A DNA stretch of 63,354 bases, counting the filler, from Pelomyxa schiedti (lineage: Eukaryota; Protista; Evosea): assembly GCA_020536535.1 (NCBI GenBank). It is 8 parts of 8 records of this genome, joined end to end, with 100 filler letters (N's around TTAATTAATTAA, not from the genome) between each part and the next. Parts side by side here need not be neighbours in the genome. Positions count along the whole stretch, not along the records: positions 61,128 to 63,354 come from JAHLWZ010002062.1; 7 more parts are not named here. One strand, written 5' to 3'. The position numbers and the translations under genes were made by a program. Positions 6,211 through 63,354 of the stretch are shown here, piece by piece; positions within the stretch are counted from its first letter, which is position 1, and each line of letters opens with the position of its first letter. Under the pieces are notes generated by a model. That model was not told the origin of the DNA, made no database searches, and worked only from the letters and a program-made list of their open reading frames with translations.

Positions 6211-8666
6211 CTATTCAGTGTCCATTCTCTCTGCACCATCATAGGAGCCTGCATCCTCTACCACCTTTTCAGGGTCATATTTTTCAAGCAACCGTGTTGC
6301 CAGTGAAACAACAGTTGTGCATTGATGGCTCTGCAGATCAGACACAGATTCTGCAAGGCTGTCATAACTTGCCCACAGCTTGTTTGGTGATCCTCTGTCT
6401 GTCGCAAGAATTCTTTGAAGTGCCTGCCGCTTTGTGGTTAACTCAACTTCTGAAGAATTGACATACTTCGAGAACAAGGATTAGGGTTGTAGGCCGATCT
6501 TCACTGACCAGGAGTTTCACCAATGGTGTGAGTATTCCCAAAGAAATCATGTATCTGGCAAATCCAATGTGAGAGTTCGGTTGTTGTTAAATCACACACT
6601 GAATGACTTCTGGATGGTTTGTTTCAATGCAATTGGCAATGACCCAGCAGGCTTCTTCACGTATACACGCATCACCTTTTGGTGATGACAAGCATTTCAC
6701 AACATGTGGGATAACCCCACTTTTGCAAAGTTCTGTCACTTGTTCCCTTGGTGTCATTGTGATGTTGGTGATGTAATTAATGATTGGAAGCTACTTACTT
6801 GTTGCCAACGGCAAGATTGGAGAGCTCTTGTTGAGAGTTGTGGAAAAAGATGAATGGCAGAGAAGAGAAGAGAAAAGGGGGTGTGTATGCAAAGCGTTTA
6901 TTGTGATGATACCCACCACCCAAAGCACAATCTGGCGACACTTACTGGGTTGAAGCAGGCTAATGTGTGGCATGTTAAGACAAAAAAATGCACATGATTG
7001 GAAGGTTCATCACACATACAATGGCGTCACAGCCTGAAAAATACCAGCATCAATGAGGCTCTGTGAGTACGTAGTAGTTAAATACAAGAAGTCAGTTTAC
7101 CTTGTATTTACCTGAGCTTCTTCAGTACTGGGTGGAGGGTAACGTTGGAGTCATTTATCATGAGTGTGAATTGAAAGGAAAGTGTAAACCTTCCATTTGC
7201 CACAGTGCCCAACACTCTCAGAGCTGGACGTTGGATGTTGGTATCACTAATCTGGTTGTGAACGTGTAAGAGCTCAGACAGTGTCAATTGATGGTTACTG
7301 AAAGAAGCCGGGTTAGTGAAGGAATAATTGTGCCAGTGGATATGATCAGTTTGATACAGGGTGGAGATTCAGCCATATAAGATAAGGCCCTGACAGAAGT
7401 TGGTGCACGAAAATGCAGTATTTGTGATGGTTAAAGTTTCCATATACCAGCAAACGTGAGTTACAACCTCTGCATCAAGATATTGGAGGAGGGCCGCAAG
7501 TACAGGCAGAGGAGAAACTGATTCACCCGCATCATCTGAAACAATTTCAAGAAATTATCTATCAATTGATGGAAAGAGAGCGCACTTGATGGCCGGAAAT
7601 ATGAAATATCTGGTGGTGGCACTCCTCGGCAACCATTTGAAATAGCCTCAGTCTGGAATGAAGGGAGGAAGTGAAAAGAAGCAAGCTGGATGGGGGTGTG
7701 GCTCCATACTGCCTTCCTCAGGAAGAACACTTTATTTGGGAATCTGACCATTGCCTTGAGCAATACTGGGAAAAAACCTAGGTGAAGCACAGAATCCCTG
7801 TGCACAGCACAATCCCCGAGGATATTGCTCAGTGCCCACGTTGCCTGTGAGTGTGTGAGTGCGCTGTTGAGTTGGTCTGAGGGAAGGTACCTGTTGACAG
7901 ACATCTACATCTGGACTTGAGGAGAGCAGGGCAATTAACTGTGGTACAATTCCACATTTGAGCACTTCCTCTGTTTGTTTTGTGCTGCCATTGCAAACTT
8001 GACAATTTAACACACCAGAGGTTAGTTAAGGGTGAAAAAAAAGCACAAACTGTTTGTCAATGCCCAAAGTGCTTCAACTTGAAAATTTGGGTTATCTGAC
8101 TGCAAGAAAAATCAGTAGAGTTGCCTCTCCCCTTGGCAACCCCAGCAAAGTAAAAAAAATTCAAACTCACACCAGAGATAAAAACTGACCAAGACGCGGC
8201 AACAAACCAGCGGCAATTACTTCGTCAATGGGTGGTTCTGCAACAAGTCAACAACACCAAGTCATAATCCAACGACACCACCTTATAATCATAATGATTT
8301 ATCTACTACTACATATTCGCTCTCTATTGACACCGCATCACAACATGCCATGGAATAACAACACAAGGTGTGCAAGTACTTACTCTCTGAGCACAACAGC
8401 CTTCTCAGCTGCACCACTCCAGTTAACGCCACGTCGCGGTCGTTGGAGTTTGCCGCCGACGCCGCCTCCGCAACACTCGACGACACTGCCAATAATTGTG
8501 GGACAGTGTTGGTTGTTATTGTTGTTGCTGCTGCTGCTGCTGGACTACAACTGGAGAAAGGTCCCGTCGTGGTGGTCGTGGTCGCTGCTGAACCACGCCC
8601 ATAATCTCCTCGTTCTCTTTCTGGTTGTGGTGTTGCCGTTGCTGTGCCGGGGTTGTTTTCATACAT
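6211..8666 (-). CDS. Importin alpha-like ARM-repeat protein (multi-exon)
   Basis: QLRRLLCSE-KPPIDEVIAAGLLPRL, QVEALWALTN, ATWALSNILGD, WAISNGCRGVPPP, EACWVIAN, with canonical GT-AG junctions at the sites checked. Confidence 0.9.
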
Positions 8667-60991: not shown

Positions 60992-61129
60992 ACCCACAAA
61001 AAATGCTTGGATAACTAACTGGCTTGTNNNNNNNNNNNNNNNNNNNNNNNNNNNNNNNNNNNNNNNNNNNNTTAATTAATTAANNNNNNNNNNNNNNNNN
61101 NNNNNNNNNNNNNNNNNNNNNNNNNNNTC

Positions 61130-63354
61130 GGCAGGTTCCTGCAGAACGGCGAGATTTCCTTTGTTGGAAGGGCCGACTTCCAAGTCAAGCTCCGCGGCCT
61201 GAGGGTCGAGCTCGGTGAGATTGAAGAGTGTTTCCGATCGAACCCCTTAGTGAAAGACGCCGTTGTCATCCTCAGGGAGGACACACCTGGGGTGCAGTTC
61301 CTTGCTGCGTATTTGACCTTGAAAGGGGAAGAGACCAACACACAAGACGTGCCCGTTTCACTCTCCACTTTCCTGAAGTCCAAGTTGCCACTTTACATGG
61401 TTCCCAGCACCTTCACCGTTTTGCCGCAGCTTCCTTTGACCTCGGCAGGGAAGATGGACAGGAAGGCTTTGCCCAAACCATCCGATTGTGATGCAGGATG
61501 TGGCAACACCGGTTCGGAGGCAGCTGATGACTCAAACATGTCTGCATTGGAGAAGCTGATCCAAGAGTGCTTGAGAGAATGTATGCCCAGCATTGAACTC
61601 GCATCTCGTTTGCATCGGCATACAGATTTCTTTGAAGCTGGTGGGAACTCGCTTCAATCCATGAGAGCATTGGCAGCTGCACGAAAGAGAGGTGTGGCAG
61701 GAATTGTACTGAGGGACTTCTTTGAAGGGCGAACAATTGCAGGAATTGCAGCACTCGTTCAGGGAAGGGAAACAGCTCACGTCGTTGAATCGGACAAGAA
61801 GTTTCTTATCACGCCGACTCTGATTGACCGCCCTCCAGAACTTCCGCTTTCGTTTGCACAGAGCAGATTGTTCTTCCTCGACAAACTCAAACCTGGAATG
61901 ACACAGTACAATATTAGTCTTGCCATGAAGCTGCATGGTTCTGTTGATGAGAAGCTGATACGTCACGCAGTCTTGTCCATCGTGACGCGCCATGAGGCTC
62001 TGAGGACAAGATTCGTTGAAGGAACAACAGGTCCACAGCAAACAATTTTGTCGGAGAAGGAAGCTGCCTCAGCTTTTGATTTGTCGGTGGTCGATCTCCC
62101 AGCAGACGGAGAAGACTCACTTTTGACGAAAATGGCCACAGATGAACTTGACAAGATCTTTGACCTTCAAAGAGGACCCCTTGTCAGGCTTGTTCTCTGC
62201 CACGTTGGGCCAAACAGACATGCCCTCATTGTGTCCATGCACCACATCGTTTCAGATGGGTGGTCCTTGTCTGTTTTCCTCAAAGAGCTCACACACTTTT
62301 ACAACAACAACACAGCTTTGGCTGCACTTCCACTGCAGTATGCCGATTTCGCACTGTGGCAGCACAAATTCATGCAAGGCCCTGAAGCTGAGAGCCAGAT
62401 TTCATACTGGAAAAAGGAGCTCGCAAATATCAAGCAAGTCTGTGATCTCCCACTCGACAGGCCACGTGCCCACCCCAGGACTTACGCACACGGTGCATTC
62501 GTCTCTCAGCTCCCATCTTCCTTGTTTACAGCACTCGTGGCTCTTGGTCGCAAATTCAACACAACCCCCTTCGTCACGTTGCTTTCTGTGTTCCAGGTTC
62601 TCTTGTACAGATTGTCTCCCAACTGGCAGAACGTGACCCACGACAACGACTCGGCAGCAGCTATTCACGGAGACATTGTTGTTGGAACCCCGACAGCGAA
62701 CAGACACTACGGCGGCGTCGAGGGAGTTATTGGATTCTTTATCAACACCCTCGCCATCAGGCTGCTCGTGGACGAGAGCCTCGGATTCACGAGTGTGCTG
62801 CAGCAGGTGAAGCAGAAGATGCTCGCGGCACAAGACGCACAGGACGTGCCGTTCGAGTGGGTCGTTGACCACGTTGGTGTGGAAAGGAGCTTGGAGGTGC
62901 AACCACTGGTCCAAGTGATGTTTGTGATGGATGAGTGGGAGATGTTGGGCTCGGAGTTCAAGATGAACGGTGTGCAGAAGGTGGAAGAAATAAACGTTAT
63001 CGAGCGTGAGCACGGAGCCGCAAAGCTTGACCTCACACTGTTTGCGAAAGCTCTGCCGAACGGCGGAGATGTGGCACTGTACTGGGAGTTCGCCAGGGAT
63101 ATTTTCGACACTGCCACAATTGTTCGGATGGCCAAGAGCATGGAAGTTCTCTGTCAGTGCATTGTGACCTCACCAGATCTCAAACTCTCTGAATTGAATG
63201 TTATCCCACAAGCAGAGGCGACGATGCAACTGGAGTGGAACGCGACCGAGAAGGACATCAGAAGAGGGGGAGTGGCAGTTCACCACCTGTTTGAAGAAAA
63301 GGTTGCAGAGAGACCGAAGGCGACAGCACTCAAGTTCATGGACTCCACGGTGAC
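61130..63354 (+). CDS. Non-ribosomal peptide synthetase, internal fragment: A(C-terminal part)-T-C-A(start)
   Basis: Open frame with no stop to the window end: GRADFQVKLRGLRVELGEIE (A8), LPLYMVP (A9), AGKMDR (A10), DFFEAGGNSL (carrier Ser codon 61649-61651), LSFAQSRLFF, RHEALRT, MHHIVSDGWS, QYADFALWQ, IGFFINTL, HHLFEEKV. Confidence 0.95.

Follow-up and report, generated by a model that had tools for sequence, protein, structure and literature searches.

The window analysed here is a stretch of 63,354 nucleotides, filler included, from the genome of Pelomyxa schiedti (assembly GCA_020536535.1), and our subject is its last part, positions 61128 to 63354, a 2,227-base contig (JAHLWZ010002062.1) carrying an internal fragment of a nonribosomal peptide synthetase (NRPS). 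We conclude, with a probability of about 0.85, that this fragment belongs to a host-encoded, probably laterally acquired, intron-free multimodular NRPS of the P. schiedti nuclear genome. Host residence follows from a 121-base overlap, which ties the contig to a scaffold where the same gene ends 270 bases before the start of the split gene for Rpc34, a subunit of RNA polymerase III. The claim rests on linkage and not on the absence of relatives elsewhere.

The frame that begins at 61130 on the plus strand runs through 741 codons without a stop, while each of the five other frames contains 8-31 stops, and the stretch 61128-63354 contains no N. This count confirms the roughly 740 uninterrupted codons described in an earlier note on this DNA, as well as the reason given there for their absence from the open reading frame (ORF) track, namely that the contig ends before any stop. 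Pfam domains and motifs also agree with the architecture read in that note: the end of an adenylation (A) domain, a thiolation (T) domain with FFxxGGNSL, a full condensation (C) domain with HHxxxDG and the beginning of another A domain. The domains follow one another as A(end)-T-C-A(start), no core motif is disrupted, and the features are as follows.

61130..63352, plus strand: single ORF with no internal start or stop, an internal NRPS fragment (stop counts, three NRPS Pfam domains)
61130..61483, plus strand: C-terminal subdomain of the upstream A domain, residues 1-118 (Pfam AMP-binding_C at residues 30-108, motifs)
61166-61225, plus strand: motif A8, GRADFQVKLRGLRVELGEIE (motif coordinates)
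61385-61408, plus strand: motif A9, LPLYMVPS (motif coordinates)
61442-61474, plus strand: motif A10, SAGKMDRKALP, with the catalytic Lys108 at 61451-61453
61538..61765, plus strand: thiolation (peptidyl carrier) domain, about residues 137-212 (Pfam PP-binding at residues 160-210)
61628-61654, plus strand: carrier core motif FFEAGGNSL, with the phosphopantetheine-accepting Ser174 at 61649-61651
61838..63226, plus strand: complete condensation domain, residues 237-699 (Pfam Condensation, E 1.3e-87, profile 4-454 of 456)
62237-62266, plus strand: motif C3, MHHIVSDGWS, whose second His is His372 at 62243-62245
62615..62671, plus strand: insertion in the C domain between C4 and C5, SPNWQNVTHDNDSAAAIHG (15-residue gap versus 5u89)
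63227..63352, plus strand: C-A linker and start of the downstream A domain, WNATEKDIRRGG..., continuing on JAHLWZ010000151.1 as a full A domain

The other condensation motifs are intact as well (C1 SFAQSRLFFL, C2 RHEALRTRF, C4 YADFALWQ, C5 IGFFINTLAIR, C6 AQDVPFE and C7 ERSLEVQPL), and those that the earlier note had quoted as SFAQxRLFF, RHExLRT, QYADFAxWQ and DxPFE are present as SFAQSRLFF, RHEALRT, QYADFALWQ and DVPFE. With an HHxxxDG C domain, a carrier serine, an A-domain lysine and several modules, the fragment has what defines a type I NRPS elongation module. The closest PDB structures for the 741-codon frame are the cross-module A-T-C construct 5u89, Txo2 and LgrA (E 1e-84 to 1e-92), and the 5u89 alignment spans residues 2-694 (E 1e-91). 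These bacterial elongation modules, which include teixobactin synthetase (Txo2, 6P1J) and linear gramicidin synthetase (LgrA, 6MFZ), share the domain order and the core motifs of the fragment. It shows only 32-41% identity to any bacterial protein found and, unlike bacterial NRPSs, lies with its gene on a nuclear scaffold beside Rpc34 and carries 15-19 additional residues in the C domain (62615-62671). This insertion is missing from 5u89, the best solved relative, and is a putative lineage-specific feature. The solved relatives closest to the C domain are ordinary elongation C domains, and a predicted LCL subtype is a reasonable lead. The Pfam scan of the 741-codon frame found no epimerisation domain between T and C; given none ahead of the C domain, the donor residue is presumably L.

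What isolates the contig is a repeated A domain, at which the assembly broke. DNA for this assembly came from seven single cells, each amplified by multiple displacement amplification (MDA), and was assembled by SPAdes with k up to 121, then binned and decontaminated (PMC8887013). Both edges of the contig match the 94,964-base scaffold JAHLWZ010000151.1, whose positions are counted from the scaffold start and whose first 11,895 bases (L011) were considered here.

63234..63354, plus strand: right repeat edge, whose 121 bases match JAHLWZ010000151.1 1-121 at 100% identity (blastn)
61128..61315, plus strand: left repeat edge, where A-domain copy 1 ends, matching JAHLWZ010000151.1 1240-1427 (the end of copy 2) at 94.7% identity with 10 differences (blastn)

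The overlap is exactly as long as the largest SPAdes k of the assembly. The last 42 residues of the frame, where the C-A linker passes into the next A domain, are 100% identical to the start of the scaffold A domain. Across the 121-base start the two A-domain copies are identical, and at the compared end 58/62 residues are; the differences gather within the final ~190 bases (7 lie at 61249-61269), and past 61312 the copies diverge. A restricted search with residues 1-62 returned P0239 at 94% identity; this P. schiedti 'non-ribosomal peptide synthetase' lies on the 94,964-base scaffold. The near-identity of the copies points to a recent event confined to the A domain, either duplication or gene conversion.

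We compared the Logan contigs of four sequencing runs with JAHLWZ010002062.1, and the resulting read graph showed the same repeat. Its branch points fall at 61279-61312 and 63234-63263. A 1,420-base Logan contig exits at 63234-63354, crosses 1,118 other bases and returns at 61128-61308. A 3,392-base contig of run X1 joins to the right of 61312, a 10,071-base contig enters before 63234, and the loose end beyond 61312 is the sequence of JAHLWZ010000151.1 from 1425 onward. Besides the C-domain end of JAHLWZ010002062.1, a second C-domain end leads into the same A domain. An A domain of ~1.4 kb is thus present at least twice, nearly identical and of the same length, and the contig is the unique T-C segment between two copies. 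The A domain has two entries, from the C end of JAHLWZ010002062.1 and from the 10-kb contig, and two exits, into the T domain of JAHLWZ010002062.1 and into the scaffold tail. Since there are only these two entries and two exits, one linear path leads from the 10-kb contig through A copy 1, the T-C piece and A copy 2 to the scaffold. From it we infer the gene order ~10 kb of upstream modules, A copy 1, T-C (JAHLWZ010002062.1), A copy 2, T and stop. The at least two modules of the earlier note are therefore correct, the read graph indicating at least three, and of its remark that the sequence is intron-free and sits on its own contig, the first part stands, while the isolation is due to the repeated A domain and not to foreignness. 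Two candidate interpretations of the graph were rejected. Tandem identical whole modules had been considered for a 3,345-base loop, but the scaffold shows that the A domain alone is repeated, the loop being two copies collapsed. The second P. schiedti NRPS contig described below, JAHLWZ010001291.1 (L006), is not the 10-kb graph neighbour, as it contains no loose-end sequence and its A-domain start differs.

The path also bears on whether the contig could belong to another host NRPS gene that shares a near-identical A domain, which would then be present in at least three copies in the genome. Adjacency is inferred through the repeat only, Logan contigs drop variants and may hide further copies, and the depths of 68, 92, 81 and 27 fit 1:2:1:1 poorly. 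Set against this, two entries and two exits of the A domain give one linear path, and we regard a separate gene as unlikely; such a gene would remain host-encoded anyway.

On JAHLWZ010000151.1 the NRPS frame is open for 630 codons and reaches its stop at 1893-1895. It contains a full A domain (Pfam AMP-binding 1-383 of 384, E 8.8e-73, plus AMP-binding_C; residues 19-384) and a final carrier domain with FFQAGGNS, and the stop lies 8 residues past the last PP-binding match, the C-terminus reading …ANASSSKSS*. In the 630-codon frame, no thioesterase, reductase or terminal C domain was found after the final T domain, an A-T terminus that differs from bacterial NRPSs. The missing chain-release domain lowers confidence in a self-sufficient line, not in NRPS identity.

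Downstream of the stop the scaffold is eukaryotic. Homology to Rpc34 is distributed over three frames (profile 65-143, 142-188 and 275-331), in profile order and separated by short T-rich GT...AG gaps. Rpc34 is truly a split eukaryotic gene, and it shares an uninterrupted sequence with the NRPS tail: the first 11,895 bases of JAHLWZ010000151.1 contain no run of N. Further downstream, the called genes are EMP24/p24, an unknown gene, Acyl_transf_3 and Peptidase_M28; for the EMP24 and Peptidase_M28 open stretches no Pfam match was found per fragment, and these two calls rest on precomputed matches. The physical linkage to undoubted eukaryotic genes is thus strong but indirect, as it passes through the repeat. 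Extension of the contig in search of intron-containing flanks, a check proposed in the earlier note, led through the 121-base overlap to the scaffold with the split Rpc34, and where that note had allowed for operonic bacterial neighbours, those found are eukaryotic (Rpc34, EMP24/p24). As a side observation, the first exon of Rpc34 (2166-2640) is very GC-rich and of Pro/Ser/Ala-rich low complexity, unlike the remaining gene, and it adds to the locally high GC (54%) beside the NRPS.

A second NRPS of P. schiedti lies in a similar context. The GenBank entry P0121, 'non-ribosomal peptide synthetase', is on the 9,608-base contig L006, where the NRPS adjoins an MFS transporter gene whose homology is split across several frames. 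It sits directly after an acyltransferase gene on the same strand (6410-7213; SAT-like, with the nucleophile motif GYSAG). By our reading of the sequence, GT-AG introns interrupt this gene at 6603-6666 and 6913-6971, in each case within a conserved acyltransferase motif. The deposited spliced product gives a SAT match with E at most 1e-5, and single open stretches give weak matches (E 0.0014-0.011). The T-C-A body of L006 (7247-9607) is intron-free over 787 codons. An acyltransferase-like 'VEIFDFGPPG' motif falls within this long T-C-A frame. The SAT-like gene and the T-C-A frame may be one gene joined via a third intron.

The C domain of L006 is the closest relative that we found to the C domain of JAHLWZ010002062.1 (45% identity). 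The two NRPSs are alike in codon usage (r 0.79) and in their intron-free bodies; L006 differs in being another module at another locus, with another A-domain start and preceded by an intron-containing SAT-like part. We built a maximum likelihood tree of 165 C domains, those of JAHLWZ010002062.1 and L006 with 163 of the best bacterial matches (LG+G4, quick search), leaving out P0121 as it is the same locus as L006. In this tree the C domains of the two Pelomyxa NRPSs group as sisters, with an SH-aLRT support of 100.

Other NRPS sequences occur in the same organism. The C7 region at 62902-62938 has a 37-base match, with 2 differences, in a 22,666-base Logan contig of run X1, which probably represents one more NRPS paralogue in that sample. 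The only other NRPS listed in the genome paper is Pelo_9594, which appears in the table of peroxisomal targeting signal 1 (PTS1) predictions in Additional file 1, the main text being silent; it opens with ketosynthase-like sequence, and its last residues are the peroxisomal signal SKL (PMC8887013). P. schiedti thus holds at least one hybrid of polyketide synthase (PKS) and NRPS as well, possibly peroxisomal.

All matches outside Pelomyxa are bacterial. Among 185,579 bacterial and archaeal species genomes (GTDB, one per species) no close relative was found, the best showing 32-37% identity, and none was found among JGI metagenome contigs (best 35-37%), in scans that match exact 8-residue patterns and detect near-identical sequence of any length. 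Among proteins of 255-1,297 residues, no close relative was found in bacteria either (best 41%), and relatives at 50-80% identity within very long proteins could escape both these length-limited searches and the exact-8-residue scans. The best matches are scattered over Acidobacteriota, Myxococcota, Gemmatimonadota, Chloroflexota and Cyanobacteria, all at 35-41% identity, with no single donor lineage. Fungi, nematodes, bdelloid rotifers and dinoflagellates carry in the eukaryotic nucleus NRPS or PKS-NRPS genes that are thought to be bacterially derived. The gene described here resembles them in being a nuclear bacterial-type megasynthase; its lineage is Archamoebae. Bacterial-type megasynthases are rare in protists, and in the literature searched no NRPS was described in Archamoebae.

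Codon usage was compared with that of the host, as the earlier note had proposed, and results support host residence. The GC content at third codon positions (GC3) is 0.59 in JAHLWZ010002062.1, 0.63 in the NRPS of JAHLWZ010000151.1 and 0.56 in that of L006, against 0.58 in neighbouring host exons (660 codons). Relative synonymous codon usage (RSCU) correlates among the NRPS parts (r 0.68-0.79) and between them and host exons (r 0.42-0.54), but not with three unrelated bacterial NRPS genes (r -0.52 to -0.08). Two studies contributed DNA and RNA-library runs that contain the sequence, single-cell RNA libraries among them, and RNA-library contigs cover the whole piece; in vitro tailing was used for the 2023 libraries, and for the remaining runs no library type is recorded.

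Several observations weigh against a host-encoded gene. No spliceosomal intron was found in the 741 + 630 NRPS codons, as expected of bacterial DNA, while the genome (52.4 Mb, 46.5% GC, ~7.5 introns per gene; PMC8887013) has an intron density that predicts 9-14 introns in 2,223 bases, so that zero has P ~1e-4 to 1e-6. The GC content of JAHLWZ010002062.1 is 51.8%, near that of the endosymbiont Ca. Syntrophus pelomyxae (49.9%; PMC10579272). The codon comparison is built on just 660 host codons, and both Pelomyxa C domains were flagged for unusual composition, which may inflate their grouping. The source DNA was MDA-amplified from single cells, a procedure that makes chimeras (PMC8887013), and in the 2023 RNA libraries poly(A) tails were added in vitro so that bacterial transcripts would be captured (PMC10579272). 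Finally, no single contig or read observed spans both the unique T-C part and Rpc34, the two being connected through the repeat.

Much of this would be accounted for if the contig were DNA of an endosymbiont (e.g. Ca. Syntrophus pelomyxae), of a food bacterium or of a contaminant, and the NRPS start of the scaffold a chimeric join: introns are missing in an intron-dense genome, every relative outside Pelomyxa is bacterial, the GC content is near that of the Syntrophus symbiont, the DNA was MDA-amplified, and the RNA libraries capture bacterial transcripts. We consider this highly improbable. The exact 121-base overlap, with 94.7% identity over a further 188 bases, leads to a scaffold with Rpc34 and p24 and no N gap. 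The independent 3,392-base X1 contig exits the A-domain end along the scaffold sequence, and a second independent contig, L006, also has an NRPS beside split genes. Nothing more than 37% identical was found in the species genomes or the JGI metagenome contigs, and codon usage is like that of host exons. A chimera is unlikely considering the exact k-mer overlap, the independent Logan contig along the scaffold and the second NRPS contig in a like context. The earlier note had left two origins side by side, horizontal acquisition and symbiont or contaminant DNA; the first is favoured by linkage, codon usage and the lack of a close prokaryotic relative, while the second is largely refuted by the eukaryotic neighbours, the lack of close prokaryotic relatives and the host-like codon usage. 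With the gene encoded by the host, the absence of introns would reflect a foreign origin with few or no introns gained in the megasynthase body.

A host-encoded sequence could nonetheless be the decaying relic of a transfer, with background transcription at most and no peptide, as no release domain follows the last T and contig depth is low in the RNA-library runs. This is very unlikely in our view. The 741 + 630 codons are free of stops and frameshifts, the catalytic motifs (A8-A10, GGNS, HHxxxDG and C1-C7) are all intact, and codon usage is adapted to the host. RNA-library contigs span the whole piece, and the near-identity of the A domains points to recent duplication or gene conversion, a better fit to an active gene.

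The deposited gene model breaks this continuous frame. On the 2,227-base contig, GenBank carries P0001, a 578 aa 'phosphopantetheine attachment site family protein [Pelomyxa schiedti]', which is near-identical to the open frame, begins at its internal Met109 and is spliced twice, first at a short putative intron.

61581..61625, plus strand: 45-base in-frame GT...AG 'intron' of P0001 (P0001 aligned to the open frame)

Excision of this stop-free segment drops 15 codons at the start of the carrier domain. After residue 676 (after 63157) the model switches to another frame and reaches a stop with the tail GDDATGVERDREGHQKRGSGSSPPV. An RNA-library contig of run X3 covers 61279-61978 ungapped and unspliced, with no joints reported there. 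The segment 61581-61625 is probably no real intron, since it has no stop inside, its removal deletes the start of the carrier domain, and the X3 contig is unspliced. Both splices of P0001 are probably artefacts of the gene predictor on a continuous frame.

Following standard NRPS logic, and judging by the intact motifs, A copy 1 would adenylate an amino acid with the assistance of Lys108 and load it onto the phosphopantetheine arm of Ser174, while A copy 2 would load the final carrier domain. The C domain, through His372 of HHIVSDG, would then join the peptidyl chain bound to the upstream T domain to the aminoacyl group on the last T domain. Because the A copies are nearly identical, the last two residues of the product should be the same amino acid. 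An unverified hand reading of the specificity pocket of A copy 2, anchored on motifs A4/A5 with GrsA numbering, gives ~D-A-A-F-Y-G-V-C-G-K, in which Asp and Lys indicate an alpha-amino acid substrate at most; GrsA (1amu) ranks 23rd among the solved relatives. Release would need a separate enzyme or be spontaneous, given that no thioesterase, reductase or terminal C domain is present.

The analysis has practical consequences for this organism. The gene models deposited for the NRPS locus are fragmented and mis-spliced, and NRPS counts from genome mining of P. schiedti would be wrong without long reads. The link between an intact bacterial-type megasynthase and a nuclear scaffold removes the usual doubt about contamination. 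A very long intron-free gene amid ~7.5 introns per gene is also useful for the rate of intron gain after transfer.

P. schiedti is an anaerobic amoeba of the Archamoebae that lives in an obligate consortium with two bacteria and a methanogen, and the locus provides a concrete gene for testing whether an amoeba dependent on prokaryotic endosymbionts makes a peptide of its own. It is conceivable, although we hold it doubtful, that P. schiedti uses the recently acquired and internally duplicated line to make its own peptide (e.g. a metal chelator or an antimicrobial) and in this way manages its endosymbionts or prey. If true, no functional NRPS would have been known in Archamoebae before, and the amoeba would be a host turning bacterial chemistry on its own bacteria.

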